A DNA stretch of 35,798 nt. Source: Macrostomum lignano. Lineage: Eukaryota. The stretch covers positions 1 through 35,798 of the forward strand of contig NIVC01003979.1 of assembly GCA_002269645.1 (NCBI GenBank), read 5' to 3'. The notes beneath the pieces were generated by a model. It saw only the letters and a list, made by a program, of their open reading frames with translations, did no database searches and was not told where the DNA came from. Below, piece by piece: positions 11,006 through 34,200 of this stretch (position 1 is its first letter; each line of letters opens with the position of its first letter). A program made the position numbers and the translations under genes.

Positions 11006-13414
11006 ATGATCTTCAAAGACAGTTTGGAAGATTCTAAAGTGGAGCAGCAAGCTGACAGCGAAATCGGGCAGGTGAGAGGCTTGTATTTGCTGGAATTGAC
11101 CTGTTGCTTCACCGGCTTCCTGTGAGATTTCTGACAATCTGTATCTTTTGGCGTCATGTACTGATCTGACATCATGTACCGATCTTCTGACACCCTGTAC
11201 TGCTCTTCTGACACCCTGTACTGCTTTTCTGACACCCTGTACTGCCGTCGAACCCCCCGAAGGTGCTGCTGCACGGCGTGTCGCTGGCGTCGCTGCGCCT
11301 TAACGGCGAGGAGCGGCTCTGCCTGGCCCAGATCTCCACCCAGCTGCTCTCCGGCCACACCTACAACGACATTCACAACCGACGCGTCGCTCTGGGCATC
11401 ACCTGCGTCCAGTGCACCCCGCGCCAGTTGGACAGCCTGCGCCGGGCCAGCGCCATGCCAGCCAGCGCCAAGCGCTGCGGCACGATCACGCGGCGCGAGG
11501 CCGAACGCCTGGTCCGCTCCTTCCTAGGCGAGCCGGAGCGGCCGCGCCTGCCGCCTGGTTACAAATTCAATGTCGGCCACGCCTGCGGCTGGGGCTGCCG
11601 GGGCAGCTTCTGGCCGGAGCGGTACACCAGCTCCAGGGCCAGGTGGGTGCCATTAAATCTCATTTAAGGGGGCGTCATTTTATTTGAGGGGGCGCCATTT
11701 TATTTGAGGGGCGCCATTTTATTTGAGGGGGCGCCATTTTATTTGAGGGGGCGCCATTTTATTTGAGGGGGCGCCATTTTATTTGAGGGGGCGCCATTTT
11801 ATTTGAGGGGGCGCCATTTTATTTGAGGGGGCGCCATTTTATTTGAGGGGGCGCCATTTTATTTGAGGGGGCGCCATTTTATTTGAGGGGGCGCCATTTT
11901 ATTTGAGGGGGCGCCATTTTATTTGAGGGGGCGCCATTTTATTTGAGGGGGCGCCATTTTATTTGAGGGGGCGCCATTTTATTTGAGGGGGCGCCATTTT
12001 ATTTGAGGGGGCGCCATTTTATTTGAGGGGCCTTATTATATTTTGAGGGGGCACCATTTTATATGAGGGGCGCCATTCTATTTGACGGGGCGCCATTCTA
12101 TACAAAGGCGCCATGCTATACAAGTGGTGCCATTTTATCTATGGGGCCCTATTTCATTTGAGGGGGCGCCATTTCATTTGGGGGCGCATTTAAGTCTAGG
12201 GGCGCCATTTTATATGAGGTGCGCCATTCTATCTGAGGGGGCGCCATTCTATCTGAGGGGGCGCCATTCTATCCAAGGTTCTATACGAGGGGCGCCCTTC
12301 TATTTGAGGAAGCGCCATTTTATTTTGAGGGGCGCCATTCTATACGAGTATGAGGGGCGCCATTACATTTGAGGGGCGCCAGAGCTACAGTGTAATTGGT
12401 TACCATATGCCAACTGACTGGGGGTGGCTGGCCCCCATAGCAACACAAAAGCCAATACTTTAGTAACCAATCACTGCCCTCAGGTGCGTGATGTGCAGCC
12501 AGTGCCGGGAGTTCTTCTCCCCGAACAAGTTCATCTTCCACTGCCACCGCCCGGAGGACTTCGAGTCGGCCAGAGTGGCCGAGTTCCGCCAGCCGGACGC
12601 GGCGAACTTCAACGCCTGGCGAAGGCACCTGACGTTGACGGACCCGGAGCCGAGCAGCGAACTGCTGCACAACTGGGAGGACGTCAAGGCGCTGTTCAAC
12701 GGCGGCTCGCGGCAGAGCACCGCCTCTGGCAAGGTTGGTCGCATGCCCCACGATTCACACACACGGGGGAAACTTCCAAGGCGCAGCAGAGAGTGTACAC
12801 GCCTGATGATTAGAAAGTCAGGGCTGCTGTACACCCTGTGTGAGCGTGTGTGCCTGCATGCGCATCAGTGCTCAGGGAGCAGCGGAACCCGGTTCACAAG
12901 CTCTCCATTGCAAACGATTGCTTCATTTCAGCCCGGCAGTCCAACAGCGGAGCAGCGGCAGGAATCGACCGCCGCCGCCGCCGCCGCCGCCACGGGCGCC
13001 CCAGACAGCAACGACAGCAGCAGCAGCAGCAGCCAGGGCGGCAGCATCTGCGGTGAGATGGCCGGCAACGGCGCAGCAGTTATCGGCGAAGAGCCGCCGC
13101 CGAAGATCTCGCCAGCTGCGGTCGCGTCGCCGCTGATGTGGGCCCAGCTTCTCATGCGGGCGGGCGCTATTCAGGGGCCGCTGCAGCCGCCCTGGCCGCT
13201 TGGACCGACGCCGCCTCTGCCGCTGATGCCGATGTCGATGCCGCTGTCGATGCCGCTGCCCGTCCCGCTGTCGCCGCCCCACCCAGCCATGTACTTTGGC
13301 TGCCCGCTGGTCGGCCGGGACAGTCCGGCCGGACAATCCGGCAATCTCCGTGGTCTGAAGAGGCGCCTTAGCGACCACTCCATCGAGGCCATTATGGGCG
13401 GCTCCGGCGTTTGA
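11006..13414 (+). CDS. SKOR: SKI family transcriptional co-repressor (SKOR1/2, Fussel/CORL orthologue)
   Basis: Exons ~11006-11071 (start uncertain; ...SEIGQ|GT), 11263-11642, 12484-12733, 12932-13414, all phase-compatible. Ski/Sno/Dac domain: ERLCLAQISTQLL...YNDIHNRRVALGITCVQCTP.QL..LRRA.AMP.S..RCG.IT.REAERL. SAND-like domain: CGWGCRGSF.PERY.SSRA.C..C..C..FFSPNKFIFHCH...QPDAANFNAWRRHL.L...WEDVKALFNGGSR. These are SKOR-specific wordings. Confidence 0.95.
11185..11243. repeat. 21-bp repeat x3 (TCTGACACCCTGTACTGCTCT) just before the SKOR exon 2 acceptor
   Basis: Three direct copies visible. Confidence 0.85.
11668..12380. repeat. 20-bp minisatellite (ATTTGAGGGGGCGCCATTTT) in SKOR intron
   Basis: About 17 near-perfect units to 12020, then degenerate copies to ~12380. 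Confidence 0.97.
12750..12890 (+). mobile_element. Dispersed hairpin element, copy C (inside the putative SKOR intron 12734-12931)
   Basis: GTGTACACGCCTGATGATTAGAAAGTCAGGGCTGCTGTACACCCTGTGTGAGCGTGTG...CTCAGGGAGCAGCGGAA. Confidence 0.7.
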
Positions 13415-15466
13415 AATTTCTATTACAGTTTTTACGAGTAGTGTCGAACAAAACCAATTTGGTGACTATTTTTATTGATGAATTTTTTTTAATGTCATCG
13501 AGTTTCATATCAGCTTCGTAAATAAGTGCAGTGCTCCGCAGTAAGAGGTGTGCCCACGATGCCATCATGGACGCAAAGACTTGCTGTTCTGCACAGCGCT
13601 TGAGTGGGGTTTGGCCATAGACAAATTTGGCTGAGAAAAATGCTATGAGTAAATACGAGTCTCGATAAACTTGTAAGTGCACCTTTAGATGAAGCACTCT
13701 TCTTTTGCAACTCGAACTGCAACTGAGCATCCTCAGTTAGTACAGGAGCCTGTACCGGTGCAGCGATTCTCAGGAACCGAGCAGACCGCAAGTACTGCCA
13801 AACTGGGACTCGAGCAGACTCATAACAGAACATCATGTGCCAATTGTCATGTCCTGCAGCAAGCCTATAGCCTAAATTGATGCTTTATTCGATTACTATT
13901 ATTGGCCATGTAGGCTTTGCCAAAATATTTGGTTATCTTTAGTTTCCCTGTGCTTTTTCCTCTTGCATTACTACTTTTATTAGTTCAGTAGCCAATTAGA
14001 GATGTTATTTACTAGCTAAATGAGACGAGAAGTGCTGCACTGCTTCGGTCTGTTCTACTTTTTTTCTATTTAAACTGTTAGATTCAAATAAACTCGTGTG
14101 AGGCGCCAAGTTGTACCCACTTTACCTTTGGCAACAATTTTCATCAGGTTGTTCTATCTTTTTCTGTCTACCAGTAGTAAGTAGTAAGTAGTATAAGTAA
14201 CTAGTGCAAAAGACTGCTCATATGAGTGAGCGGCTGTTAAAAAAATGACCGTGTAAATAGAATATAATGCACACATAAAAACGCACAGTGCAGGCCAAAG
14301 CAATTATTAAAATACTCTAGTATACGAAATGAATAATCAAGTTTGTTTAAATGAAGTTATCTGAGAGTTACAGGGTCGACGTGTCTGCTGATTTGTAGTT
14401 CAAAGAAGACAACAGAAAGGCAATTTTCTAGTGGTATTTGTTGCAGGATTACGAGTACTATATGATAACTTGATGGGGGCCACTCAGCACATTTGCGTGC
14501 AAGCTGCTGCCAGTTCAGTAGTAAGTTAAATAGAAGCATTTTAATGTATTTTAGATTACCCAGCTGATGAACTCTTCCGACCGCGTCTTTCCCCACCAAA
14601 CACCCGCCCCAGCCCCCAATTTTTATTGCCCTTCCTCGCCCGGTTTTCCCGCCTGCCATGTACATTTTGGTGACGCAGGGCTAATGTACATTAGGGCTAG
14701 GGCTGCACCAATCGCAAGAAGCTGTTTACGCCTGCAAGTCACTCCAACTGCCTCATTTTATAAAAATAGCCTTTAAAATTCTTTCTTACTACTGAACTGA
14801 AAGTAGAGGAACTGTTTTATCAAGCAAATATGCCAAATTGGGCCGAAGTCATCTAGTTTTTTGCCCGTGTAGTTACCTATAAATAGCTATCAAAGTACCT
14901 AATAACAATTAAACTTGAATATTACACACACTACACAGAATGTGTAACGAGGCGAAAAAACACTCGAGTTTCGGTTAGGAATTTACAATTGATTGTACGC
15001 ACAGCAATCGGCATGAAAGTACAGTCACTGGCTCAAAGAATATCGCAATGTACATGCACGCTCTTAAAATTTTCAAGCCAGAGGCGGAGATGTGTACGTT
15101 TACGGGGTTAAAACAATCACGTGACGTGTCTATCGCAACTGACCCTGCCTCAAACGGGTCAGTCGTGTAGCGATTGTACATTTATCTTTACACTGGAGTA
15201 TATTACAAAGCTAGGCACGCTGGTACTACTGTAAGTAAGTAGCGGTTTAATAAATGTTTGCCAACAATAATATAACTAATAAAAATGGAACTGGAACTTC
15301 GAGTAAATAAAAATATAATACAAAATATTTGCTGTAAATGTGCGATGTTGTAAAACAACAACAACAAATGTGCGATAGTGATCTGATTGAATTACCGTGA
15401 ATATCGCAGAGATTAAGGTTTATTACAGCTTAACTATCAATGAAAACGATTGAATTGTCTTTCGGA

Positions 15467-15595
15467 GGCGTAACCAGGATTTTTCATGGGGGGCGCTAGC
15501 ACCGGGGGGCGCTAGCACCGGGGGGCGCTAGCACCGGGGGGCGCTAGCACCGAGGGGCGCTAGCACCGGGGGGCGCTAGCACCGGGGGCTACGCC
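15467..15595. mobile_element. Short MITE-like element with GGCGTA(G/A)CC terminal inverted repeats and an internal 16-bp tandem repeat
   Basis: GGCGTAACC (15467-15475) vs GGCTACGCC (15587-15595); interior (ACCGGGGGGCGCTAGC) x~6. Confidence 0.6.
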
Positions 15596-15703
15596 CAAAA
15601 GTTCCCTTTGGTACTAAAAATCGCTTTCAAAGCCCTAATATTAACAGAACCAATTAGAAAACCCATCAGTAATTGTGCCGGCCTGTATCAACCAGCCGGG
15701 ACC

Positions 15704-18700
15704 TCAGCCCACAATGTACTGCTTGTAATTGGACAGCTTCTTCAGCTGCGCCTTGACTGCTCGCACCAGATCGGTGGGCTGCATCACCAGGCTGATCTCC
15801 GGCCCGTGCGCAGACAGCCGGTGCGCCACCTCCTTGGGCTCCGGCCACAGCCTCAGCGGACGGCCGTTGACCTCCGTCAGCGTCCAGGTGGTGAAATTGG
15901 CGTCATCAAGGACGCCCGCGGTTCGATAGGCGAGGCCGTGGGCCGCCGCCAGACCGTCCTGGAAGATGCAGTTTTGTTTGATTGGGATTTGAGAAGATTT
16001 GTGGATGAGGCTCACTTCAGGTGTCTTTGACCATGCCACTTACAGGATAATGGGGGTAGAAGTTTAGGTAAGTGGAAGGAGACTCAGTTAGGTGAAATGA
16101 GACTCAGGTAGGTGGAATGAGACTCAGTTAGGTAGAATGAGACTCAGGTAGTGGAATGAGACTCAGGTAGGTAGAATGAGACTCAGGTAGGTAGAATGAG
16201 ACTCAGTTAGGTGAAATGAGACTCAGGTAGGTGGAATGAGACTCAGTTAGGTGAAATGAGACTCAGGTAGGTGGAATGAGACTCAGTTAGGTGAAATGAG
16301 ACTCAGGTAGGTGGAATGAGACTCAGTTAGGTGAAATGAGACTCAGGTAGGTGGAATGAGACTCAGGTAGGTGGAATGAGACTCAGTTAGGTAGAATGAG
16401 ACTCAGTTAGGTAGAATGAGACTCAGGTAGTGGAATGAGACTCAGGTAGTGGAATGAGACTCAGGTAGGTGGAATGAGACTCAGATAGGTAGAATGAGAC
16501 TCAGTTAGGTGGAATGAGACTCAGGTAGTGGAATGAGACTCAGGTAGTGGAATGAGACTCTAGTAGGTGGAATGAGACTCTAGTAGGTGGAAGGGATTCA
16601 AATCCGCCTCACCTGCTGCACGTGGGCCACCTCGGCCGATTGTCCGGTGGTCACCAGGCCGAGAGAGCGGCCGTCTGGCCGGCTCACGCAGAAGGCCTTG
16701 CCATGCGGCAAGCGCCGCAGGCGGAGGGCCACCCGGCCAACGGAGCCCTGCAGGATTCGGCGGCACTGCTCCAGCGACTCCAGCCGGAAGCCGTCCACGC
16801 TCATCACCTGTTGACGGAAGGTGAGCTGGTATTAACCGACCAACCAAGTGAGGAGGAAGGAACCGCCAAGGACCGCTGATATTAAGCGGGTCTACGCTAG
16901 CTGTGCAAGCCGCCGCCGGCTCACCTGGTCGCCAACGCGAAGGCAGCCGTGCAGTCGAGTCGCTCGCCGATTCCAGCCAGCGATCCACAGCCTACCAGCG
17001 CAGTGGACGATGGCCACATTGTCGAGTAGGTCAGCAGCGTTGCAGTACACCTGCACGCCACCTGGGTGCAGAATCTGGCGCTTCAACCGTTCGACCGAGG
17101 CGCAGAGCGGACTGAGACGCGGCCCGCCGGGACCCAGGGTGTTCACCACGAACTGGCCGCCCTGGGTCTCCTCGACGCTGATGTCCGCCTGGAGGAAAGG
17201 ACGGCGGGTTGAAAACATTTACTAAGAATCATCCAGAGTTCTGTGGTGGACCACAAAATAGCTTGGCAAGTTAAGCAATGAAACGTAGCTATCAACACAA
17301 ACTCTAATTTGCGCAACCCCTAAATTTCACAACCCCTAAAAACGATTTTGTCGACAAACTGATAAATAATATTTTTACCGAACAACCCCTTTTTCCAGCT
17401 TTTCTTATTAAACCAAGTGCTAGAGTCAAGGATTCGAACCGGGCAAATCCAATTCGAATTTGCGCCAAAAAGTGACGTCGTTAAAAAGTCGTTAAACTCA
17501 GAATAGATTTTTTAAATACTACGAGTACACGATGTAATAGTAATTTTTGAAGGTACTAGAAATATGCTTAATGATACATGCTTAATACTACGAGCGTATT
17601 TGCATCCAAGAATTTCTCCTTTTGGCGCCAATTCGAATTGGATTTAATTCAGCAAAAACAAAGCCAGATCATGTGCACGCAATCTGTTACCTTTCTATCA
17701 AAGAAGCCGGACACCAGCACCGGCTTAGTCAGGTGCTGATAGGGCGGCGGGTCCGGATTGGGCCGGAACACCCCGACGGCTGACCGAAACCGCCTGGTAC
17801 GCAGTCGAGTCAGGGCGTCCCAGTCCTCCAGCTCGCGGTATTTGCTCTCAAGCACAGCGTACGCCTCCGGCTCCATGGCGTCCAGCTCGGCGAACTGAGG
17901 ATAGGTGTACTCGATGTGAATAATACAATTGCATCGCGCTATCCCATCACGTGACTGCCATCCCACCATTATTAGCCATCCACTCCTTATCTATTCTTAT
18001 CTTAGGTAGACAAAGTGTGCTTCAACATGCAGCTACTACCCAAAATCTAGGAGAAATTGCCCCCTCGTCACCTCGTCGCCTTTGTCTTTGTCAACCTCCT
18101 CGCTGTCCTCGCCGCCCTCGTAGATGCTGTACACTGTCTGCAGCTGTTGGCGCAGATCCTTGACCCCGGCTTCGCCACGCTCTCGACGCATTCGATCTTC
18201 CAGGCGGTGCAATTCGCGCAGCACTTCGCCTCCGCGCTGACGTCTTTGCTTTTTGGACTGGCTGAGCAGCCTGCTCCGGTCTGCCGTGTCCTCATCCTCA
18301 GCACCAGACTCGGCCTCCTCCTCTTGAGCCTCAGCCTCCGCCTCCGCCTCCATCCGCTTCAATCCTTCGATATCATCGGAGTCGAAGTCGAACGAATCGC
18401 TAGCAATGTTCTCTTCCGCTGCTGCAGCCTGAGCTCCTTGTCGCTGCACTGCCGCTAGCTTTTCATTGTTGGGGCTGCAATGATTTTTGCACTTTTCTTG
18501 CTCGGTTGCCTTCTGATTGTAATAAACAAGTGTAAGATAGTTAAGGAATTCAAAGATTTGATTGCAGTCAGTCAGCTATCTGTAGGTCTCGCAAGGGCGT
18601 ATTCAGCATGCCAGTGTGGTATGAGACAGGACCAGGACCATGGGCTAAGGTCTGCGATGCTCCATGCCTGCCCTCATCTTCAGCAGGTAAAGGCCGGAGG

Positions 18701-19520
18701 GAGGTCTGCCCCCTCTATTTGCCTCTGGCAGCCGCAGACCCCCCACGCTGTCTCGCAAGCCGACCCAGGGTCCCGGCGAGTGTTCAAGGCAGACCCTAGG
18801 GCGCTGGTGACCCATCCAGTGGCTTTTGCCGAACTTGGGTATGCGGGTCTGGCTCGCCAGTTCGCAGGCCGTGGTACTGCTCAACGTACCCTCTAATGCC
18901 TAAGGTGTTCGACCGTGCCGATGGGCTAGAATGCCGGGGAGTAGTCCGGTCGCAAGCGGTCCCCCTCCTGGTGTCGGGCCAGCCTTGGGGGTTCTTTTGG
19001 CCTACTGCCCGGTCAGGTGGAGTGGCCCGGTGAGTACCGCGCTCCTTCGAGGGTAGCCCACCAACCTTTATCTCTAGGGCACTACCCACCTGATGTCCCC
19101 GTTGTCGTACACCTCGCCTTCATCGTCCTCATCATTATCCCCCAAGGTGCCGTAGATGTTCTCCGGCTTGCTCCTGTCGGCCAGCTGGGCCAGATTCCTG
19201 GACAGACAAGCCACCCAGTCGGCGGCCTCCTGCTGCGAGTCGGCGGTGAGGGTCAGCATGCGGTCGGACAGCGCCATCAGGAAGCTGCAGGGATCGTCTA
19301 CTAGCGCGGCGACCCGGCTGCAGCCGCGCAGGTCGAACGAGTTGATTGGTGGGTCCGTTCTGGCCGCGGCGGCGTCCTCGTAGTACTCGAGCGAGGGCAG
19401 ACCGCCGAACAGCAGGAAGACGAACCAGCGGCGGGTTGGGCGGCGGAGCAGGCTGATGGGGCCGCTGGCCAGGGTCTGCTTCTTCAGGTAGCCAGCTTTG
19501 ATTACTACCTGCTGGTTCAT
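15704..19520 (-). CDS. PH-domain adaptor with acidic Tyr-containing linker and two C-terminal PDZ-like modules (583 aa)
   Basis: Exons 19520-19090, 18474-18072, 17894-17691, 17188-16925, 16807-16613, 15958-15704; all junctions GT/AG and phase-compatible, total 1752 nt. PH signature: IKAGYLKK...RRWFVF...LEYYED...INSFDL...LTADSQQEAADWVACL. PDZ-like text: LRVGDQVMSVDG...VALRLRR and LGL...EVAHVQQDGLAAAHGL...LTEVNGRPL. Confidence 0.85.
16080..16590. repeat. 19-20-bp minisatellite (GAGACTCAGGTAGGTGGAAT)
   Basis: About 25 tandem units filling most of the last intron of the PH gene. Confidence 0.96.
17445..17645. mobile_element. ~200-bp MITE-like element with 27-bp terminal inverted repeats
   Basis: AAATCCAATTCGAATTTGCGCCAAAA (from 17445) vs CTTTTGGCGCCAATTCGAATTGGATTT (17619-17645); AT-rich interior; no clear target-site duplication. 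Confidence 0.7.
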
Positions 19521-19625
19521 CTAGGCCGCAGTGCTTGGTAATGACGGGGTGGTTGTGAGTTGTTAGGCCATGTTGTAGTCAACGCTTTTCTGCTTTTCTT
19601 AATAATTTCTGCCTTCAAGGTCCGA

Positions 19626-20040
19626 CCACAGACTACAGAAACGTATTTCTTTGGCCCCGGCCATAGACTACAGAAACGTATTTCTTTGGCCCCGGCCATA
19701 GACTACAGAAACGTATTTCTTTGGCCCCGGCCATAGACTACAGAAACACATTTCTTTGGCCCCAGCCATAGACTACAGAAACGTATTTCTTTGATCCGAC
19801 CATAGACTACAGAAACGTATTTCTTTGGCCCCAGCCATAGACTACAGAAACGTATTTCTTTGGCCCCAGCCATAGACTACAGAAACGTATTTCTTTGGCC
19901 CCGGCCATAGACTACAGAAATGTATTTCTTTGGCCCCGGCCATAGACTACAGAAATGTATTTATTTGGCCCCGGCCATAGACTACAGAAATGTATTTATT
20001 TGGCCCTGGCCATAAACTACAGAAACGTATTTATTTGACC
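19626..20040. repeat. 35-bp minisatellite (CCATAGACTACAGAAACGTATTTCTTTGGCCCCGG)
   Basis: About 12 tandem units upstream of the PH gene ATG. Confidence 0.96.
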
Positions 20041-20452
20041 TGGGACAATAAAACTCCAAATTTGGATTCTAACAAAGGTTCAGCACTACCGGTCGAATAC
20101 TAACCGTTACCATCGCAACCAGCGGTTGCTATCGAATCACAGTATTCGGGGCCAAAGGCGGTCTTAGGCCTTTATGATACACACGCTTTGACAGAGAGCT
20201 TATCTGTAGTGCGAATTGTCTCAGCATCTCTGATGCTGTTTTATACTCAACAATGAGAGACAGTGGGTACAGAGATGGTCCATACTATTATTCTCATCTT
20301 TTCTCAGACACGGAGTGAGTGTAGGTTCAGTATGGGTTGAGTCACCGTTGACACACTTCAAGCAAAAAAAATTTGAGTTCATTTTAGAAATGATTTCTCT
20401 CATAGACGTGCTTTTGCGTATGCAAAATGGGATTAAGCCAAACAAGGGATTG

Positions 20453-20688
20453 CCATCATAAACTCGAAAAATCACATCGTCGAAAACAAGGCTCCATCAC
20501 AAGCTCGAAAAGGCACAAGCTCTAACCCTAACCCTAACCCCAAGGCACAAACCCTAACCGTAACCCCAACCCTAACCTAACCCTAAACTAACCCTAAAGG
20601 CACAAGCTCTGACCCTAACCCTATTCGAGCTTGTGATGGTGGTTGCTAAATCAGTTTTCGACGATGTGATTTTTCGAGCTTATGATGG
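20453..20688. mobile_element. Nested inverted-repeat element enclosing degenerate telomeric (CCCTAA)n
   Basis: Outer IR 20453-20487/20654-20688 (35 bp, 1 mismatch); inner IR 20494-20509/20624-20639; interior of CCCTAA-type hexamers. Confidence 0.75.
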
Positions 20689-21687
20689 CCCCCCCAAACA
20701 AGGACAGAGTCGCAATCATGTAAACACTTACAGTTCGAGTTTGAAACCGATGTTTCTCAAGATCAATTAAACCCCTCCGTCAGGAAATGAAATTGTTGTC
20801 TTTTGCGCGTTTATTGCCGTGCTGGCTAAGAGCGCGAAACTTTTGGTTTGGGGTGGCGAGCAGATCGAATGAGGCCACAAAAAAAGAGAAGAAATGCTCA
20901 GCTGAGCAGAGTGCTGCTGCTGTAGCTCTTGTGTTTATAAGCAGTAGGCGAAAATAAGAGAGAAGGTACTGAAAAATTGTGCACACACACTGTCGAAGCT
21001 TCTCTGCTCCAAGTGAAAGAGAATTCTGCTTGGTCTTCCAAAAGAGACTCTCCAAAAGGTGTATCATCGGTAAGAGACAGAGCTCAAATTCTCAGCCAAT
21101 GAGTATACGGAATGCTTGCTATTTCCATGTTCCTACACTGAGTAAGCTGTTATTTTAATACCATGACACGGCAGATGCGCTCTTAAAGTAGCCATGAATT
21201 CAAATCTGACAAATTTGTGTAATTATAGTGTTGTACAGATTGCCTGCTGTTGTGATAGCACCATCGGCACATTGCAGCTCTGCTTTTGTGGGTGCATTGT
21301 GTCCACTATGTATGAAACCTCTATTGGTGGGAACATTAGAGCAAAAAGTGAATGATGAGCTGCAAAACGTATAATGATATCAACCTTAGACAATCGCGTG
21401 ACTCAGTAGGTCACAATCCTGGAAAACCACCTGCCACAGGTCATGTTTCACAGATCACCTATCTATCACGGAAGAGCGATACTGGATAGTTACATGTACA
21501 GAATTTTGTTTACAAGGCAATTAATGTTATTTTATGATGAAGTCAGTTCCTATTTGATTACACGTTTATTTCGTGCGATAATGACATGACTGAGTGATTA
21601 AAATGAAATTTAAAATCAAACCGTCACCCGTCAGTCAAGGATGTACCGCATCAGTCAGTTTAAAGACCCAATGACCACACCAGCCTC

Positions 21688-22950
21688 CTAATCAGTGCCG
21701 CTGGTGTTGCAGCTCACGTGGTACCAGGTGATGGCATCCATCAGGTTCGGGTCCGTGCCCTTCACGCACTGGCAGTCGGCGCCTCTCACCTTCATGGTGG
21801 CTCCCGGCTCGTAGAACACATTGCGACCCTCGGCCTCGTTCCACACCTCGCAGCCATTGAGGCGGCACACCCACTCGGTCTGGTCGCTGCGCCGGCGGCC
21901 AAGGATGTAGGCGAAGCCGCACCTGCACAGGTCGTTGCCGACCGTCTTCTCGGCGCCGTACGTGTCGCACGGCTCACCGCAGCTGGCCACGGCGAACAGG
22001 CTGCGGGTTTGCGGGGTGGGGGTTAGTGTCTGGTACAGGACTTCCATTGTCCCCTGTTGGACAGGTGTCTGATACAGCTGACTATCATTGTCATCTGTTG
22101 GACAGGTGTCTGGTACAGCTGACTATCATTGTCACCTGTTGGACAGGTGTCTGATACAGCTGACTATCATTGTCCCCTGTTGGACAGGTGTCTGATACAG
22201 CTGACTATCATTGTCACCTGTTGGACAGGTGTCTGGTACAGCTGACTTCCAGTGTCACTTGTTGGACAGGTGTCTGGTACAGGACTCCAGTGTCACTTGT
22301 TGGACAGGTGTCTGGTACAGGACTTCCAGTGTCACCTGTTGGACAGATGTCTGGTACAGGACTTCCAGTGTCACCTGTTGGACAGGTGTCTGGTACAGCT
22401 GACTTCCAGTGTCACTTGTTGGACAGGTGTCTGGTACAGGACTTCCAGTGTCACCTGTTGGACAGGTGTCTGGTACAGGACTTCCAGTGTCACCTGTTGG
22501 ACAGGTGTCTGGTACAGCTGACTTCCAGTGTCACTTGTTGGACAGGTGTCTGGTACAGGACTCCAGTGTCACCTGTTGGACAGGTGTCTGGTACAGGACT
22601 TTCAGTGTCACCTGTTGGACAGGTGTCTGGTACAGCTGACTTCCAGTGTCACTTGTTGGACAGGTGTCTGGTACAGGACTCCAGTGTCACCTGTTGGACA
22701 GATGTCTGATACAGGACTCCCATTGTCACCTGTTGGACAGGTGTCTGATAAAGGACTCCCACTGTCACCTGTTGGACAGGTGTCTGATGCAGCTGACCTC
22801 CATTGTCACCTGTTGGACAGGTGTCTGATACAGGTGTCAGTCCCAGAAGTCCTAGTCACGTCTCCTACTCATCTAAAATCCAACCAGTTAAACAAAAGAA
22901 GCTCACCATGTCACCAGGACAGCCGCAGCTCCGAAGGTCTTGGCAATCAT
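21688..22950 (-). CDS. Secreted small Cys-rich protein (118 aa), left copy
   Basis: Exon 1 22950-22907 (MIAKTFGAAAVLVT+TG|GTGAGC), exon 2 22000-21688; joins to MIAKTFGAAAVLVTCLFAVASCGEPCDTYG... with a hydrophobic signal peptide and 8 Cys in the mature part. Confidence 0.85.
22048..22835. repeat. 38-41-bp minisatellite in the intron of the left secreted-protein gene
   Basis: About 20 units of CAGTGTCACCTGTTGGACAGGTGTCTGGTACAGGACTTC and variants. Confidence 0.96.
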
Positions 22951-23529
22951 ATCGATGGCTGTGGAGTTTCTGCAGAATATTTCTCTGTAGAAGGCTTTAC
23001 TTGTCTCGTTGCAGAGCAAAGTTTGTCTCAATGGGCAGCAGGACCTGCTTATTTTTATAGACTCTGGCACGTTGACAATGCACTGCGTTATTTGGGGAGC
23101 AGGTCGGTTCTTTAATTATTTAGTAATTGTTTTCATTGCATAATCAGGTACCTCGATTTCTAAATATTCAGAATGTATTCAGAGAACACAATAAATTGCT
23201 AGTCATAGCCAACACAGATACATGTAAGAAAACATAATGGATTGCTAGACTAGCCAAACACAGATAGGAGAGAAGAATGGATTGCTAGACTCTGCACAAG
23301 ATTACAAAAGAGATTATTAACAAATTCGTTTTTGCTTGTCCTTCAAAGAACTAAAACTTTATTTAAAGATTATTAAAATTCTTTAAACTGATAGATCTGC
23401 CCGATCCAGCACTTGCTGCACACTATTTAGAAATCGAGGTACCTGATTATGCAATGAAAACAATTGATAAATAATTAAAGAAGCAACCTGCCCATCCATA
23501 ACGCAGTGACGTGTCAACGTGCCAGAGTC

Positions 23530-23536
23530 TATAAAA
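23530..23536 (+). promoter_or_regulatory. TATA box (TATAAAA) of the right secreted-protein gene, mirrored in the left arm
   Basis: Canonical TATAAAA ~110 bp upstream of ATG 23639; TTTTATA at the equivalent position in the left arm (~23053-23059). Confidence 0.6.
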
Positions 23537-23638
23537 ATAAGCAGGTCCTGCTGCCCATTGAGACAAAATTAGCTCTGCAACGAGACAAGTAAAGCCTTCT
23601 ACAGAGAAATATTCTGCAGAAACTCCACAGCCATCGAT

Positions 23639-24495
23639 ATGATTGCCAAGACCTTCGGAGCTGCGGCTGTCCTGGTGACATGGTGAGCTTCTTTTGTTTA
23701 ACTGGTTGGATTTTAGATGAGTAGGAGACGTGACTAGGACTTCTGGGACTGACACCTGTCCAACAGGTGACAATGGAAGTCCTGTATCAGACACCTGTCC
23801 AACAGGTGACAATGAAAGTCAGCTGTATCAGACATCTGTCCATCAGGTGACAACGAAAGTCAGCTGTATCAGACACCTGTCCAACAGGTGACAATGAAAG
23901 TCAGCTGTATCAGACACCTGTCCAACAGGTGACACTGGAAGTCCTGTATCAGACACCTGTCGAACAGGAGACACTGGAAGTCCTGTATCAGACACCTTTC
24001 CAACAGGTGACAATGAAAGTCAGCTGTATCAGACACCTGTCCAACAGGGGACAATGATAGTCAGCTGTATCAGACACCTGTCCAACAGGGGACAATGATA
24101 GTCAGCTGTATCAGACACCTGTCCAACAGGGGACAATGGAAGTCCTGTACCAGACACTAACCCCCACCCCGCAAACCCGCAGCCTGTTCGCCGTGGCCAG
24201 CTGCGGTGAGCCGTGCGACACGTACGGCGCCGAGAAGACGGTCGGCAACGACCTGTGCAGGTGCGGCTTCGCCTACATCCTTGGCCGCCGGCGCAGCGAC
24301 CAGACCGAGTGGGTGTGCCGCCTCAATGGCTGCGAGGTGTGGAACGAGGCCGAGGGTCGCAATGTGTTCTACGAGCCGGGAGCCACCATGAAGGTGAGAG
24401 GCGCCGACTGCCAGTGCGTGAAGGGCACGGACCCGAACCTGATGGATGCCATCACCTGGTACCACGTGAGCTGCAACACCAGCGGCACTGATTAG
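23639..24495 (+). CDS. Secreted small Cys-rich protein (118 aa), right copy
   Basis: Exon 1 23639-23682 (donor GTGAGC), exon 2 24183-24495 (branch-point-like CACTAAC at ~24154-24160, acceptor CCGCAG). Protein identical to the left copy. Confidence 0.87.
23752..24150. repeat. Mirror copy of the 38-41-bp minisatellite (about 10 units) in the intron of the right gene
   Basis: Reverse complement of the 22048-22835 unit with fewer copies. Confidence 0.95.
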
Positions 24496-25206
24496 GAGGC
24501 TGGTGTGGTCATTGGGTCTTTAAACTGACTGATGCGGTACATCCTTGACTGACGGGTGACGGTTTGACTTTAAATTTCATTTTAATCACTCAGTCATGTT
24601 ATTTTTTTATTGTATATTGTGTAGGCTATATACTAGCAATCTACTGTTGTTTACTGTCCGTGAATTAGTCACTTCCTATCAGTGCTTAAATATAATGAGT
24701 ATGATTAATTGATTTGATAATACCATAGTAATAAATAAATAATAATAAACAATACTATCCATTGCCAAGTAAATAATTATAATAGTACGTATTTAAAGTA
24801 AATTTAAACGAAAGTCAAGGTCAAAATGCTTAAATTTTAATCACAGCATCAGTAAAAGCAACGAATTCATAGTTAGTGTAAACTTGCCTCTATATATTTT
24901 ATTGCTCAATTTTGTTTAACTGCAGCAAAAAAATTAACAAAAGAAGCGATAAGGCAGCAGGTTACAAAAGTATAAAATTTGAGACTAGAAGCTTTGATTA
25001 GGGTTTGATAATTGACTTCTTTAGTAAAAATCAAGTTTGACCGCACAAGCGGCTAAATATAACAATATTGAAATTATTGAAAAAAATGGATTATTGCACG
25101 TTTAAGATACAGAAATTTCATTTTAGAGAAATTTTATCAACAAATATTCGTTCATTGCACAGAAAACACTTGGATAGCTGAACCGTTATGGCACATTCAG
25201 TGTCGG

Positions 25207-28200
25207 TTATTTCTTCTTTGCGAACCCGGTATCGAAGTCTTTTTGACTCTCCTGAAATTTAAGTGCATGCCAGACATGTCAGAAAAATAAGATAACATCG
25301 GGATCAGGTGACATCGGGATCAGGTGACATCGGGATCAGGTGACATCGGGATCAGGTGACATCGGGATCAGGTGACATCGGGATCAGGTGACATCGGGAT
25401 CAGGTGACATCGGGATCAGGTGACATCGGGATCAGGTGACATCGGGATCAGGTGACATCGGGATCAGGTGACATCGGGATCAGGTGACATCGGGATCAGG
25501 TGACATCGGGATCAGGTGACATCGGGATCAGGTGACATCGGGATCAGGTGACATCGGGATCAGGTGACATCGGGATCAGGTGACATCGGGATCAGGTGAC
25601 ATCGGGATCAGGTGACATCGGGATCAGGTGACATCGGGATCAGGTGACATCGGGATCAGGTGACATCGGGATCAGGTGACATCGGGATCAGGTGACATCG
25701 GGATCAGGTGACATCGGGATCAGGTGACATCGGGATCAGGTGACATCGGGATCAGGTGACATCGGGATCAGGTGACATCGGGATCAGGTGACATCGGGAT
25801 CAGGTGACATCGGGATCAGGTGACATCGGGATCAGGTGACATCGGGATCAGGTGACATCGGGATCAGGTGACATCGGGATCAGGTGACATCGGGATCAGG
25901 TGACATCGGGATCAGGTGACATCGGGATCAGGTGACATCGGGATCAGGTGACATCGGGATCAGGTGACATCGGGATCAGGTGACATCGGGATCAGGTGAC
26001 ATCGGGATCAGGTGACATCGGGATCAGGTGACATCGGGATCAGGTGACATCGGGATCAGGTGACATCGGGATCAGGTGACATCGGGATCAGGTGACATCG
26101 GGATCAGGTGACATCGGGATCAGGTGACATCGGGATCAGGTGACATCGGGATCAGGTGACATCGGGATCAGGTGACATCGGGATCAAATGTTCTCTTGCC
26201 TCCGCTAGCTCGACCAGGCGTTGCAGAGCCTCCTCGCTGAGGTCAAAGTCCTCCACTACGGACCAGGTGCCCTTCGGCTGAAATCTGACTGGAAAGCTGA
26301 ACACCACGCCCTCCGGGATGCCGTACCAGCCTGGGGGTTTTTTGCATGGTTCAAAATCATTGCCTTGAAGCAAGCGAATAAAACTTAAGAAATAAATCAT
26401 TAGTACAGGAGGGAGAACTCAGTCACATTGGTACAGGATCAGTGGGAGAACTCAGTCACATTGGTACAGGATCAGTGGGAGAACTCAGTCACATTGGTAC
26501 AGGATCAGTGGGAGAACTCAGTCACATTGGTACAGGATCAGTGGGAGAACTCAGTCACATTGGTACAGGATCAGTGGGAGAACTCAGTCACATTGGTACA
26601 GGATCAGTGGGAGAACTCAGTCACATTGGTACAGGATAAGTGGGAGAACTCAGTCACATTGGTACAGAAGCCGGAGCAGTGCTCACCCTTGGATGCGATG
26701 CCCAGCGAGGTGACGCCGCCTCCGGCCGCCTGTCCGAGCCACCAATCTCGTAGGGTGTCGGCCGTGGCCCGGGCGAGGCTGGCCGCAAAGTGTCCGGCCG
26801 CCTTGCCGTCGGTCGGCCAGAGACTCTCGGCCTGCCGCTTGGCCAGCAGCCTGGGCAGATCGGTCTGGACCCATTCCTGGTCCCACAACGGCTCGGACAG
26901 TGGCCGCTTGTACCAATCTGGCCCGGTCACGGCGCCAGTCTCCTCGCCGCCCAGGTTGGCGCGGTCCAGCTCCGGCCAGTGGCCGCCGGCCGGGTCACCC
27001 CAGATGACCAGGTCGCCCACGCATGCCGGATTCACCTCGTAGCGGCCCTGGCCGAGCCGGGCGGCTACGGCGCCCTTGGCCCAGCGCTCCATCAGGCGCG
27101 GAGTGGCGGCCACCCTGTCCGGGTGTGGGGCCGAGGGGCCACCGCCGCGGGCCCGGCCAGCCGCGGACCATTCGAGAAGGACGCGAGCGCCGAAGTTCAC
27201 CGGGGCGCGGCCGGAGACGAGGATTCTGGGATGGGGTGGTCGGGGTATTTGAGCGATTGGGAAACTGATCTCTAGTTAGCTGGTTAGTGGGGGCCGTAGC
27301 CCAGTGATGAGTTAGCGGCCCAGGCTCGATTCCAAGTGCAGTCACCATTAATTTGAGGCTAAATTGGAATCTCGGCTTGGCTCTGTTCGTGCAATTAACG
27401 CCCTTGAGGACCAACCCCCAAGGCACAGTGAAGTGTACATGCCTAACGATAAATAAAGTTAGGGCCGCTGTACACTCCTGTGTGAGTGTGTGCCTGCTCA
27501 GGGGAGTCGGCGGAATGGGCAGTAATGCCTCTCGCCGGTTGTGTGACAATGTCGCTTAAAGTGCGCCAGGGTGCACATGGCCCTCTGCCTGTGATAACAA
27601 AGGAAGCATGCAGCATCATCAGCAGCAGCACCTCCAGCACCGGCTGCGGGCAGTGCGACTCGACGCGGATGATGCGGCCTGCCAGCTGGAGCCGCCGACG
27701 GCAGTTACTAATCCTACAGATTAAAATTACATGTACCTAATGGATTTCAGGTAACGTAGTTTAGCAGTGCTCTCACCGAATGCCGGCGGGCCCGCCGCAG
27801 CCAGCCGCCTGGATGGCGGCCGCGTACTCCGCATACAGACTGGCGTAGCGCCTCAGCCAATGGGAGCGAGCCTCGCCCTGATTGGCTGGCGAGTCACCCG
27901 ACGCTGCTGACTGCGACGGCTCGAGTTCGTCCAGCAACACCAGCAGTTCGGCGCCGGCCAGCGCGTCTGCGAGACTTCGCGTGCATCTGATGGAGCGGAC
28001 AAGCGGCTGGGCCAGGTCCGTGACTTCCATGGCCAGACCCTTGGTAATTTGAGGAGTGAGTGTTGAGTTTTTTAAGTTATTTCGTTCACAAATATTTATT
28101 TAGGGGCGTAGCCAGGGAGGGGCAAGGGCTGTACTTCCATCTCCCTAACCGGATGGCAAAGTCTATGGCGCCCCTGGTGCTAAAGCCTCTGGTGCTGGCG

Positions 28201-31200
28201 CCCCTGGTGCTAAAGGCCTTCAAATTAAATGGCACTCCCTCCCTTAAAAATTCTGGCTAAGCCCCCATATCATATTAACAAACTAAACGCATTGCGGTAT
28301 ACAAATAGAAAAACAAAATTAATGTGAGTCCAACAAACAATTACGAGTATTTTTGACTTGCCTTGATTTGTGAATAAAAAATGGAGGTAGCGCAAAGCCA
28401 ACTTGCATACCATGTTGATGTAATTGCCTCCCGTGTAACAATCAGTCTCAAAAACTGCACAGGTTTTTATTGTTGCCATTTTAGCAGTTTCAAGATACTA
28501 TTTAAAAAAGGTTCATAATTTTTATGCCTGGCTTCTAATTAGTATCTCTTCATTCAATGGATATTGAGATAGACACTTGGGATGTCTTGACAGAAAACTA
28601 ATTATACCTTATCTTCATATCTCCTGTCTCACCTATCTTTCCCCTAACTCTCCCCTACCTCTCCCCTATCTCTCCCCTACCTCTCCCCTACATCTCCCCT
28701 ACCTCTCCCCTACATCTCCTCTACCTCTCCCCTACCTCTCCCCTAACTCTCCCCTACCTCTCCCCTACATCTCCCCTACCTCTCCCCTACCTCTCCCCTA
28801 CATCTCCTCTACCTCTCCCCTACCTCTCCCCTAACTCTCCCCTACCTCTCCCCTACATCTCCCCTACCTCTCCTCTACCTCTCCCCTACCTCTCCCCTAC
28901 CTCTCCCCTACCTCTCCCCTACATCTCCTCTACCTCTCCCCTACCTCTCCTCTACCTCTCCCCTACCTCTCCCCTACCTCTCCCCTACATCTCCTCTACC
29001 TCTCCCCTACCTCTCCCTACCTCTCCCCTACCTCTCCCCTACATCTCCCCTACCTCTCCTCTACCTCTCCCCTACCTCTCCCCTACCTCTCCCCTAACTC
29101 TCCCCTACCTCTCCCCTACCTCTCCCCTATCTCTCCCCTACCTCTCCCCTACATCTCCCCTACATCTCCCCTACCTCTCCCCTACATCTCCCCTACATCT
29201 CCCCTACATCTCCCCTACCTCTCCCCTACATCTCCCCTACATCTCCCCTACATCTCCCCTACCTCTCCCCTACCTCTCCCCTACCTCTCCCCTACATCTC
29301 CCCTACCTCTCCCCTAACTCTCCCCTACCTCTCCCCTATCTCTCCCCTACCTCTCCCCTATCTCTCCCCTACCTCTCCCCTACATCTCCCCTACCTCTCC
29401 CCTACATCTCCTCTACCTCTCCCTACCTCTCCCCTACCTCTCCCCTACCTCTCCCCTACATCTCCCCTACCTCTCCTCTACCTCTCCCCTACCTCTCCCC
29501 TACCTCTCCCCTAACTCTCCCCTACCTCTCCCCTACCTCTCCCCTATCTCTCCCCTACCTCTCCCCTACATCTCCCCTACATCTCCCCTACCTCTCCCCT
29601 ACATCTCCCCTACCTCTCCCCTACATCTCCTCTACCTCTCCCCTACCTCTCCCCTACCTCTCCCCTACATCTCCCCTACCTCTCCCCTACATCTCCCCTA
29701 CCTCTCCCCTACCTCTCCCCTACCTCTCCCCTACATCTCCTCTACCTCTCCCCTACCTCTCCCCTACCTCTCCCCTAACTCTCCCCTACCTCTCCCCTAT
29801 CTCTCCCCTACCTCTCCCCTATCTCTCCCCTACCTCTCCCCTACATCTCCCCTACATCTCCCCTACATCTCCTCTACCTCTCCCCTACCTCTCCCCTACC
29901 TCTCCCCTACATCTCCCCTACCTCTCCCCTACCTCTCCCCTACCTCTCCCTACCTCTCCCCTACCTCTCCCCTACATCTCCTCTACCTCTCCCCTACCTC
30001 TCCCCTACCTCTCCCCTAACTCTCCCCTACCTCTCCCCTATCTCTCCCCTACCTCTCCCCTATCTCTCCCCTACCTCTCCCTTACATCTCCCCTACCTCT
30101 CCCCTATCTCTCCCCTACCTCTCCCCTACCTCTCCCCTACCTCTCCCCTACCTCTCCCCTACATCTCCCCTACCTCTCCTCTACCTCTCCCCTACCTCTC
30201 CCCTACCTCTCCCCTAACTCTCCCCTACCTCTCCCCTACCTCTCCCCTACCTCTCCCCTACCTCTCCCTACATCTCCCCTACATCTCCCCTACCTCTCCC
30301 CTACATCTCCCCTACATCTCCCCTACCTCTCCCCTACATCTCCTCTACCTCTCCCCTACCTCTCCCTACATCTCCCCTACCTCTCCCCTACATCTCCCCT
30401 ACCTCTCCCCTACCTCTCCCCTACCTCTCCCCTAACTCTCCCCTACATCTCCCCTATCTCTCCCCTACCTCTCCCCTACATCTCCCCTACATCTCCCCTA
30501 CATCTCCTCTACCTCTCCCCTACCTCTCCCCTACCTCTCCCCTACCTCTCCCCTACCTCTCCCCTACCTCTCCCCTACATCTCCTCTACCTCTCCCCTAC
30601 CTCTCCCCTACCTCTCCCCTACATCTCCCCTACCTCTCCCCTACATCTCCTCTACCTCTCCCCTACATCTCCCCTACCTCTCTACCCTATCTGTCCCCTA
30701 TCTGTCCCCTATATTTCCCTTATCTCTCCCCTATCTCTCCTCTACCTCTCCCCTACCTCTCCCTACCTCTCCCCTAACTCTCCCCTACCTCTCCCCTATC
30801 TCTCCCTACCTCTCCCCTATCTCTCCCCTACCTCTCCCCTACATCTCCCCTACCTCTCCCCTACATCTCCTCTACCTCTCCCCTACCTCTCCCCTACCTC
30901 TCCCTACCTCTCCCCTACATCTCCCCTACCTCTCCTCTACCTCTCCCCTACCTCTCCCCTACCTCTCCCCTAACTCTCCCCTACCTCTCCCCTATCTCTC
31001 CCCTACCTCTCCCTACATCTCCCCTACATCTCCCCTACCTCTCCCCTACATCTCCCCTACATCTCCCCTACATCTCCTCTACCTCTCCCCTACCTCTCCC
31101 CTACCTCTCCCCTACATCTCCCCTACCTCTCCCCTACATCTCCCCTACCTCTCCCCTACCTCTCCCCTAACTCTCCCCTACCTCTCCCCTACATCTCCTC

Positions 31201-34200
31201 TACCTCTCCCCTACCTCTCCCCTACCTCTCCCCTACCTCTCCCCTACATCTCCCCTACCTCTCCTCTACTTCTCCCCTACCTCTCCCCTACCTCTCCCTA
31301 ACTCTCCCCTACCTCTCCCCTACCTCTCCCCTATCTCTCCCCTACCTCTCCCCTACATCTCCCCTACATCTCCCCTACCTCTCCCCTACATCTCCCCTAC
31401 ATCTCCCCTACATCTCCTCTACCTCTCCCCTACCTCTCCCCTACCTCTCCCCTACATCTCCCCTACCTCTCCCCTACATCTCCCCTACCTCTCCCCTACC
31501 TCTCCCCTACCTCTCCCCTAACTCTCCCCTACCTCTCCCCTATCTCTCCCCTACCTCTCCCCTACATCTCCCCTACATCTCCCCTACATCTCCTCTACCT
31601 CTCCCCTACCTCTCCCCTACCTCTCCCCTACCTCTCCCCTACCTCTCCCCTACCTCTCCCCTACATCTCCTCTACCTCTCCCCTACCTCTCCCCTACCTC
31701 TCCCCTACATCTCCCCTACCTCTCCCTACATCTCCTCTACCTCTCCCCTACATCTCCCCTACCTCTCCCCTACATCTCCCCTATCTGTCCCCTACCTCTC
31801 CCCTACCTCTCCCTATCTGTCCCTATCTGTCCCCTATATTTCCCTTATCTCTCCCCTATCTCTCCCCTTTTTTTACCTTATCTCCCCTATCTTTCCCTTA
31901 TCTCCTCTATCCTTCCGGTTCCCTACCTCTCCCCTCTTTTCCCTCTCTCTCCTCTATCTACGATCTCTCCTCATCTCTACTCAATCCAATCCCCTCTCCT
32001 CCAACCCTCTCTCGCAGACTGCTCACCTCCATCTCATCCGATCCCCGCCTGTCGTACAGGGTGACGGCCAGCTCGGTGCCGCAGCCGAACACGGAGCCGT
32101 CCGCAAGCAGCGGCAGCAGGTGATAAGCGGCATCGCCGCAGGCGGCCGTCACGGTGACGCGAAGCGGACGAGATTTTGCTCGCAACGCGGACGTCTCCGC
32201 GTCCAGTTTGGCCTTGTAGCGAGTGTTGTCATTGGCAACCGCCCGCTGCTGGGGACTCGTCATGTCCGACTCGAAGTCGTAGTAAGCTGATTGAATGATG
32301 TAAAGAATAGTAAAAAGAGTGGCTGGATTGTTGTGTCGTGGCAAGGAGCCCGTAAAAGGGCCGTTTTTCTGACTAACTAAAAAGGGGTATTTTTTCCTAC
32401 TACTCTACTTAAAGTAGTGCAGTTCATAAATCATTCGTATAATGTATTTTGGAATCACGTGACATTTTGGGGTTTCTAATTTATTGATTGTGTAATAATT
32501 TATTGTTGGATGTCAAATATAAGCGCGGGTTGTCCTAAGGGAGCTCTTGTTCTTGTTTACCGGCAAAAGTCTTACCTGCCTAAGTACTCGTTTGTTTTTC
32601 CTGTGTTAGTCTATCGAGACACCACATGGATACTCGTAGTTAGCGAATCAGCAGGTGACTTTGGAAACTGTACATCTGCTCTGAATTTCTCATACACCTT
32701 TATTCCTTCTTTCCTTGGGAGGAAAGCGTTGACCCTTCATAGGCTCTGTAATAAGCTCTTTAAGTCTTGCGCCACTCAAGTCAAGAACTCGCTTTGAAAT
32801 CATTGCTGCAAAAATTCTGTATGAAACTTTGCGGCATCTTTGTTTGGGTTTTCCAATTTGGAAGCTGCAGACATCTGACCCATTCTGACGCTTAAAAGAC
32901 ACCAGAAACGTCGCCACCGGGGTGACAGGGGGACAGGGGCCAATGCTTTGCCCGCCACCCCACCTTTGTTGACCTGTTATGGAAATCAATAATTTTGCTT
33001 CAGGGCAACAAAAATGTGCCTACGGCGCTAAAATGAGTGCCTGTGGCGCTAAAATGAGTGCCTGTGGCGCTAAAATGAGTGCCTGTGGCGCTAAAATGAG
33101 TGCCTGTGGCGCTAAAATGAGTGCCTGTGGCGCTAAAATGCGTGCCTGCGGCGCTAAAATGAGTTCTTGTGGCGCTAAAATGAGTGCCTGTGGCGCTAAA
33201 CTGCGTGCCTGCGGCGCTAAAATGAGTGCCTGCGGCGCTAAAATGAGTGCCTGTGGCGCTAAAATGATCGCTGACAACACCGATTCTGAAAATAATGTAC
33301 ATTTAGGAATTTAGTCGCGTACATGAACATGCAGAATTCTTGGCTTTGTCCCCCCCACCATAAAATCCATGGCGAAGCCCCTGAAAGACACCCAGTTCAA
33401 AGTTCAACACACGAAGTTGGCTAGATCAAGGCACCTAAAAATCTCGAAGACTTGATACGAGTTGAGTAGAGTTTTTCAATTTGAGTACTTCAATCTCACC
33501 TTTAGCATATTCCTGGAATTCGTTGGCGCCCCCAATCAGGACACCTTTGCCGCCTTGGTTCACCAGCTCTCGCCACACGATAGGGGATTTGTACTGATGC
33601 CAGCCGCGCTCCTCGCAGCACTGACGGGACCAGTCCTGGCGAAATAAAATGGCCAATGCAGACTTCTTTTGGCTTAAACAGAATTTTATATCAAAGTTTA
33701 TAGAAGGACCCGCCAATTGTGTAAATTCACAGTATTTTACAACAAGGTGCGCCCACCTAGTTTATAAATCTATGTAAATTTATTGAGCGTCGCTTCTTTC
33801 AATTTTTTTCTTGACAAACTTGTAAGTTCAACTCGAACAAAACGCATAGTCTTTTTTCGTTTTGTTTGAATTCGGAAGTCCAGAAGGTGACATGGCTATT
33901 GTGAGTTTTGACGATTTTCTCACCGGCCATTCCTCTGGAGTTTTCACGATCTTCGTCAATTTGAAGGCTGGCAAATTCTTGGCTAAATAATCGGCCAGTA
34001 GTTCTACTCTGGCATAGTACGGACAGTCTGATGAGCCTAAAATGTATTATTTTGTTTTTATGTTTGATGATGTGCGGCGTAAATATCCTTTATGCAAAAT
34101 CAGTTAGTGACGAAAATTCAATGATTACTCGTATTAGCAAAGTATGATTGAATATTTTGAATACATTTATAAAAGGATACGAATCACTAAATTTTTACAT

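Follow-up and report, generated by a model that had tools for sequence, protein, structure and literature searches.

Replication-based rearrangement commonly yields inverted duplicates, and head-to-head pairs with concerted evolution include Hsp70Aa/Hsp70Ab of Drosophila and young inverted duplicates of C. elegans. The gene-bearing palindromes of the primate X and Y chromosomes (P1-P8 and others) have arms of 9 kb to 1.45 Mb. The locus described here, from Macrostomum lignano, a flatworm, is a 3-kb palindrome with two head-to-head copies of a gene for a small, predicted secreted, cysteine-rich protein, positioned in the ~5-kb gap from a malate-dehydrogenase-like (MDH-like) gene to the PH-domain gene Mlig033688. 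The DNA analysed (the window) is the entire 35,798-bp contig NIVC01003979.1 of the Mlig_3_7 assembly (GCA_002269645.1, NIVC01; PMC5730564), in which the PH-domain product is PAA49094.1 (BOX15_Mlig033688g3; 583 aa).

The locus shares with the Hsp70Aa/Hsp70Ab type the presence of two complete divergent copies with their own promoters, a short unique spacer, and near-identical or fully identical coding sequences (CDSs), while it differs in having a two-exon gene, a predicted secreted product, and a hypervariable intronic minisatellite, and in that a divergence gradient along the arms is the sole pointer to concerted evolution. Compared to the primate X/Y palindromes, the similarities are an arm identity of at least 99% over most of the length, a unique spacer, genes in the arms, and a proposed arm-to-arm conversion, whereas the M. 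lignano arms are 1.2-1.6 kb long, carry one gene each, and occur in a hermaphrodite with no sex chromosome involved.

A repeat finder returned two inverted matches, 21580-22200 with 23983-24603 (621 nt, 99% complementary) and 22830-23091 with 23498-23759 (262 nt, 98%), and gapped BLAST, with the left side reverse-complemented and aligned to the right one, merged both of these into full arms, giving the following architecture:

21580-23166, minus strand: left arm, proximal to the PH-domain gene, with gene copy A; 1587 bp (repeat finder and gapped BLAST)
23167-23423, no strand: unique spacer between the two promoters; 257 bp
23424-24603, plus strand: right arm, distal, with gene copy B; 1180 bp (repeat finder and gapped BLAST)

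A 621-nt inverted match at 99% is far beyond chance, and the lengths of the arms and spacer agree to the base with those proposed in an earlier note made from the sequence. With inverted arms of high identity, a unique spacer, and a complete gene in each arm, the locus is a gene-bearing palindrome. The 407-bp gap in arm length is due wholly to a 41-bp intronic minisatellite, present in 20.4 copies in copy A (22026-22834) and 10.1 copies in copy B (23751-24157). The minisatellite unit holds a short inverted repeat (ACCTGT-TGG-ACAGGT). When compared to its own reverse complement, the spacer scored no better than shuffled sequences and has no residual inverted symmetry. It does contain three imperfect direct repeats, (G)GATTGCTAG(A/T)C...CACAGATA, starting near 23195, 23241, and 23281 (within 23195-23320), which might be regulatory elements common to both promoters.

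In addition to the length of the minisatellite, the arms differ at 18 alignment columns. The 3' part of the arms, comprising exon 2 and the first 108 nt of the 3' untranslated region (3'UTR), is identical at 444 of 446 positions, and the 5' part, comprising the promoter, exon 1, and the start of the intron, has 316 matching positions (of 330 and 327 in the two arms). Arm-specific sites include 23568/23571 versus 23021/23018 and 24568/24600 versus 21615/21583. The two copies had been described previously as identical, which holds for the CDSs (0 differences), but not for the arms as a whole. The differences are unevenly distributed, with 12 differing columns (~7 events) in the innermost 88 bp and four in the other 685 bp of non-minisatellite sequence that extend outward from the TATA box (Fisher p = 2.9e-9 counted by columns, 4.5e-5 counted by events). 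Judged from the alignment, this gradient may reflect arm-to-arm gene conversion that misses the centre or erosion at the centre of the palindrome, and either process fits.

Each arm holds a two-exon gene oriented away from the spacer, with the following components:

23052-23059 (23059-23052), minus strand: TATA box TATAAAAA of copy A, ~100 nt upstream of the ATG, read from the sequence
22907-22950, minus strand: coding part of exon 1 of copy A, MIAKTFGAAAVLVT plus TG of a Cys codon; hydrophobic start of the predicted signal peptide, donor GTGAGC
22001-22906, minus strand: intron of copy A, 906 nt, phase 2, includes the minisatellite at 22026-22834
21688-22000, minus strand: coding part of exon 2 of copy A with the stop codon; Cys-rich predicted mature protein
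21565-21570, minus strand: AATAAA of copy A, 10 nt outside the arm
23530-23537, plus strand: TATA box TATAAAAA of copy B
23639-23682, plus strand: coding part of exon 1 of copy B
23683-24182, plus strand: intron of copy B, 500 nt, phase 2, includes the minisatellite at 23751-24157
24183-24495, plus strand: coding part of exon 2 of copy B with the stop codon
24730 and 24744 (24730-24749), plus strand: two AATAAA of copy B, ~130 nt outside the arm

In each copy, the 44 coding nt of exon 1 account for most of the predicted signal peptide and are joined to 313 coding nt of exon 2, yielding a spliced CDS of 357 nt and a product of 118 aa. Splicing is supported because exon 1, if left unspliced, reads directly into a TGA (MIAKTFGAAAVLVTW*), because the donor (GTGAGC) and the pyrimidine-rich acceptor (...CCCGCAG) are in place, and because the introns of both copies have 5-13 stops in every sense frame. 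The minisatellite was considered as coding sequence and rejected based on its 41-nt period, the stops in all sense frames, and the ordinary intron found at this place in a paralogue (see below). Long antisense open reading frames (ORFs) over the minisatellite (22170-22709 and 22528-23115, plus strand) are spurious by-products of a stop-poor repeat. The two TATA promoters lie ~470 bp apart. At the other end of the genes, the arms stop 108 nt past the stop codons and, with the duplication ending that far into the 3'UTR, the two copies must each rely on a separate downstream AATAAA. The earlier note had predicted such a divergent pair, with a TATA box, a signal-peptide exon, a minisatellite intron, and a Cys-rich exon in each arm, and had placed the end of the duplication just inside the 3'UTR with a separate AATAAA per copy outside the arms; the gene structure was recovered as described, and the AATAAA motifs were located at 21570-21565, 24730, and 24744.

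The palindrome is real in the genome, as seen in the contigs and gene models. The sister genes Mlig033688g2 and Mlig033688g1 are located on contigs NIVC01003836.1 (L001) and NIVC01001271.1 (L002), respectively, and in both contigs this head-to-head pair recurs upstream of the PH-domain gene. All differences between the proximal and distal arms, which involve the inner promoter, two sites in the 5'UTR, and the outer boundary, occur in the same arm across the three contigs, and their spacers match at 100%. No two of the six copies have introns of equal length (~906/500, 1105/1318, and 993/824 nt; range, 500-1318 nt), while the CDS, splice sites, and TATA boxes are intact and identical in five of the six. 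The sixth, the distal copy of L001, has five indels in exon 2. These look like long-read errors, because L001 has indels without substitutions elsewhere; over 26700-27899 of the window, it has 0 mismatches and 14 gap positions, which suggests a poorly polished contig. Other parts of L001 (e.g., 4017-4319 and 842-2027) likewise have many single-base indels and almost no substitutions relative to the window.

Both arms are also represented in two UniRef gene models, A0A1I8H5Q8 (1024 aa) and A0A1I8ITQ0 (1088 aa), which are chimeras covering 15600-27200 of the window on the minus strand. The models join the MDH-like gene, an antisense ORF of the distal exon 2 (24157-24465), the translated promoter, the proximal CDS, and the whole PH-domain gene, and the small gene is without a stand-alone UniRef entry. 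The models presumably derive from the older ML2 assembly via WormBase ParaSite and, if so, the ML2 assembly has the inversion too.

Along the locus, the three contigs form a mosaic, with 0-3% divergence overall and ~0% across the palindrome (6900-28000 of the window compared to L001 and L002). The window is identical to L002 over ~7200-13800, 1-3% diverged from both L001 and L002 over ~13800-19500, and nearly identical to both over ~20100-24600 and 26700-27900. This pattern suggests recombination or conversion between haplotypes or homeologues. Dating the duplication to before the whole-genome duplication, based on the arm differences shared among contigs, was considered and rejected, as the palindrome is ~0% diverged and the local coalescence is recent.

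The gene looks real, because a paralogue shares its intron position and phase and because its family has an invariant framework of Cys, Gly, and Asp residues. An exhaustive HMMER search with exon 2 returned the 1024-aa UniRef model, which contains the protein at 99% identity and whose 90%-identity cluster comprises M. lignano proteins including PAA49094.1, and the paralogue PAA68186.1 (Mlig010735g1; 116 aa, 55% identity, E = 5.7e-33). The Mlig010735 locus is transcript-annotated and single-copy, and has no inverted repeat or tandem repeat; the paralogue is not palindromic. Its only intron is at the same position and in the same phase, splitting a Cys codon (TG|C) inside the predicted signal peptide. 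Between the gene and its paralogue, the Nei-Gojobori ratio of nonsynonymous to synonymous substitution (dN/dS) is ~0.48 (dN, 0.36; dS, 0.76), which indicates constraint, though on a fairly fast-evolving protein.

Distant relatives were found in the nemerteans Lineus longissimus and Tubulanus polymorphus and in metagenome and read-archive contigs. One of the contigs, ENA scaffold ERZ23486787 (L004), encodes at 8001-8330 a 109-aa relative that is single copy in a compact eukaryotic genome, beside MutS-like and PHD/FYRN genes. Across the relatives, nine columns are invariant (G64, C65, C91, C93, G96, D98, L101, D103, and C112; four Cys, two Gly, two Asp, and one Leu), and the C-terminal module has the motif C(R)xNGC...PG...CxC..G.DPxLxD...LYHxxC. 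The N-terminus has a hydrophobic h-region (residues ~5-20; Kyte-Doolittle, 2.3-2.5) and a small-residue VAS|C site, and the relatives likewise begin with hydrophobic leaders. The signal peptide is likely cleaved before C22, placed there because a conserved CxxxC follows the hydrophobic N-terminus, which would leave nine Cys in the mature chain and makes a disulfide-linked dimer possible. By its sequence, the protein is a member of a small uncharacterised family with one M. lignano paralogue and nemertean relatives.

A word-indexed homology search with the 118-aa protein returned no match and, with the family alignment, one metagenomic relative; the index evidently misses these eukaryotic proteins. 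Pfam-A 2025 had no family at E <= 10 for the protein, for a 68-aa fragment of the paralogue labelled DUF4789, or for the C-terminal modules of the paralogue and two nemertean relatives; scanned at full length, the paralogue and relatives had no family at E <= 1. Against the PDB, the sequence searches remained at chance level, with a best E of 0.07 for the single protein and 0.67 for the profile. The DUF4789 label is given by UniRef to A0A1I8GGQ0, the 68-aa fragment, which covers the C-terminal module of Mlig010735. Assigning the protein to DUF4789 was considered and not adopted, as there was no Pfam match even for the labelled fragment and none is on record for the paralogue; the domain itself is uncharacterised (bioRxiv 10.1101/2023.09.03.556149). 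A literature search on the locus tags, PF16033/IPR031993, and M. lignano palindromes returned nothing relevant.

Structure prediction with AlphaFold2 (AF2) gave a poor model from the single sequence (predicted local distance difference test (pLDDT), 57) and a usable model from an alignment of eight sequences (pLDDT, 74.9), which is all-beta with eight strands. Foldseek returned no significant match in the PDB (best E, 0.23; template modelling (TM) score, 0.24-0.34), and the weak top matches were fibronectin type I (FnI) pairs (3gxe, 3ejh, and 2cku), MUC2 vWC, and VWF C6. The model resembles pairs of von Willebrand factor type C (VWC) and FnI modules in its all-beta fold and its two consecutive Cys-framed modules, and the C..G...W...CxC of the N-terminal module recalls the first VWC subdomain. 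It differs from them in the lack of a significant Foldseek match, in having CxC rather than CxxCxC, and in the lack of a Pfam VWC or fn1 match. Based on the model, the best guess is that the product may be an extracellular binding protein of two small disulfide-framed VWC/FnI-like beta modules.

Taken as a whole, the locus probably arose when one small nuclear gene was duplicated in tandem in an inverted, head-to-head orientation, and it would be divergently transcribed, with a doubled dose of the secreted protein, a reading held here with moderate confidence. Each copy would be transcribed outward from its own TATA promoter on either side of the 257-bp spacer, with the two promoters possibly sharing elements in the spacer, and a single secreted extracellular protein, disulfide-rich and all-beta, would be made at twice the dose. 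The locus is an ordinary inverted tandem duplicate gene pair with no hint of a new mechanism. Its earlier characterisation as "system-like" is too strong for what is a plain inverted tandem duplicate, in a genome that abounds in duplications and tandem repeats. The dose doubling, homogenisation, and effector role (reproductive, adhesive, toxin, or immune) proposed in the earlier note are putative, and the protein has no characterised relative.

Several observations weigh against this reading. The transcript-guided GenBank annotation includes the paralogue but places no gene inside the palindrome on any of the three contigs. An exact match to the 118-aa protein is missing from a 15-billion-protein collection, and the unspliced ORF is likewise not on record. 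With six near-identical inverted copies, multi-mapping reads would be lost, which could account for this absence, as could silence of the genes, so the absence is weak evidence. There is no significant match (Pfam, E <= 10; PDB, best E 0.07; Foldseek, best E 0.23) to support a function for the protein. As for gene conversion, the gradient is compatible with it, but the six copies have no informative variation in the CDS. The near-identical zone has one variable site among the six copies, the equivalent of 24568 (C in two distal arms, T elsewhere), which is uninformative; one new mutation explains it equally well, and because of this conversion is not demonstrated.

An unlikely alternative to a functional pair is that the structure is real and one or both copies are silent or decaying, a neutral by-product of a duplication-prone genome with no dosage function. 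In addition to the missing gene calls in the three contigs and the missing product in the protein collection, the indels in exon 2 of the distal L001 copy are in line with decay, and the genome is prone to such by-products, with duplicated non-repetitive blocks totalling 180 Mb and simple and tandem repeats making up 15% of the Mlig_3_7 assembly (PMC5730564). However, five of the six copies retain an intact and identical CDS, splice sites, and TATA boxes, the L001 frameshifts look like long-read errors, and the family shows conservation in its invariant Cys positions, with a dN/dS below 1.

Considerably less probable is that the locus is a source of hairpin RNA, in which minus-strand read-through from the MDH-like gene would transcribe the right arm as antisense and the left arm as sense, forming ~1.2 kb of double-stranded RNA processed to small RNAs that regulate the gene or its paralogue. 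The geometry permits this, as the MDH-like gene is on the minus strand with its last coding exon (26328-26179) upstream of the palindrome in the minus-strand sense, and the automatic minus-strand models span the MDH-like gene, both arms, and the PH-domain gene. However, the interval separating the MDH-like gene from the arms contains three minus-strand AATAAA (their plus-strand complements start at 24898, 24836, and 24606), and the chimeric models translate a promoter and an antisense exon, so that they look like ab initio artefacts rather than transcripts. Further, both copies keep ORFs, promoters, and splice sites that a pure hairpin locus does not need. Drosophila hairpin RNA loci regulate young testis genes and, by analogy, a self-regulating version can be envisaged, in which a read-through or spacer-spanning transcript would form a 1.2-kb hairpin and the small RNAs would tune the gene and perhaps Mlig010735. 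This version is, if anything, slightly more doubtful than the first; if true, it would be the first such locus in a flatworm.

The arms of Foldback elements contain tandem subrepeats of unequal copy number, and the tandem 41-bp subrepeats of the M. lignano arms, unequal in number and with a short inverted repeat in each unit, recall this arrangement. It is nonetheless very improbable that the palindrome is a foldback-type mobile element or its remnant, with long terminal inverted repeats built partly of tandem subrepeats around a captured host gene. No target-site duplication was seen in the flanks at the outer ends of the arms, the palindrome occupies one and the same site with matching flanks in the three contigs, and no further copy of an arm or of the minisatellite was found in the window or at the paralogue locus (L003). 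The arms are wholly explained by one gene, and the paralogue has an identical exon structure.

The least probable explanation is an assembly artefact from a fold-back chimeric long read, a worry raised by the earlier note and now largely dismissed: PacBio reads with missed adapters are able to generate palindromes and all three contigs come from one read set, but such a chimera would have no asymmetric 257-bp spacer without self-complementarity, and the 18 arm-specific columns, the unequal minisatellite lengths, the distinct unique flanks with a different gene on each side, the recurrence of the structure in three contigs with a nearby mutual divergence of 0-3%, and the presence of both arms in chimeric gene models believed to come from an earlier assembly all argue against it.

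As an inverted tandem duplicate, the locus is of interest first for annotation. The M. lignano annotation lacks a stand-alone entry for a protein gene that is present in six near-identical copies on three contigs and appears only in chimeric models, and transcript-guided annotation in this species is likely to have blind spots at palindromic and multi-copy loci. Together with Mlig010735 and the nemertean proteins, the gene defines a small, predicted secreted, Cys-rich family, its C-terminal module strongly conserved, that is so far apparently restricted to these lineages, and the function of this family is testable, with RNA interference, in situ hybridisation, and transgenesis available in M. 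lignano. Two reports describe extra copies of a large chromosome in the sequenced line, after a recent genome duplication (PMC12869490, PMC10733133), which accounts for the duplicated and repeated content of the Mlig_3_7 assembly. In this neopolyploid genome, the three haplotype or homeologue copies constitute a small natural experiment on the evolution of short palindromes and intronic minisatellites. None of these findings would be surprising to a specialist, and the main practical value is the correction of the annotation and an easily testable gene in a tractable flatworm.

The remainder of the window is rich in repeats. An Rfam scan of the whole window returned no match. There are 43 tandem-repeat rows in the window, because the M. 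lignano genome is rich in repeats and duplications. A 16-bp minisatellite (25295-26186; 55.8 copies, 100% matches) begins right where the last MDH-like coding exon ends, and the MDH-like reading frame enters its first unit and then stops. A 3.2-kb array at 28627-31868, with an 11-bp unit (TCTCCCCTACC), ~296 copies, and a GC skew near -1.0, is flanked by ORFs given to the MDH-like gene by the chimeric models and the L002 annotation (PF02866 Ldh_1_C) and is probably intronic, because it lies between ORFs assigned to this gene. Between the palindrome and the PH-domain gene, there is a short interstitial telomere-like array, (CCTAAC/CCCTAA)n, at 20510-20623. Further, exons of a SKI/SNO-family gene are present on the plus strand at 11263-11667 and 12488-13414, with Pfam matches to Ski_Sno_DHD (E = 1.1e-28) and the c-SKI Smad4-binding domain (E = 4e-8).

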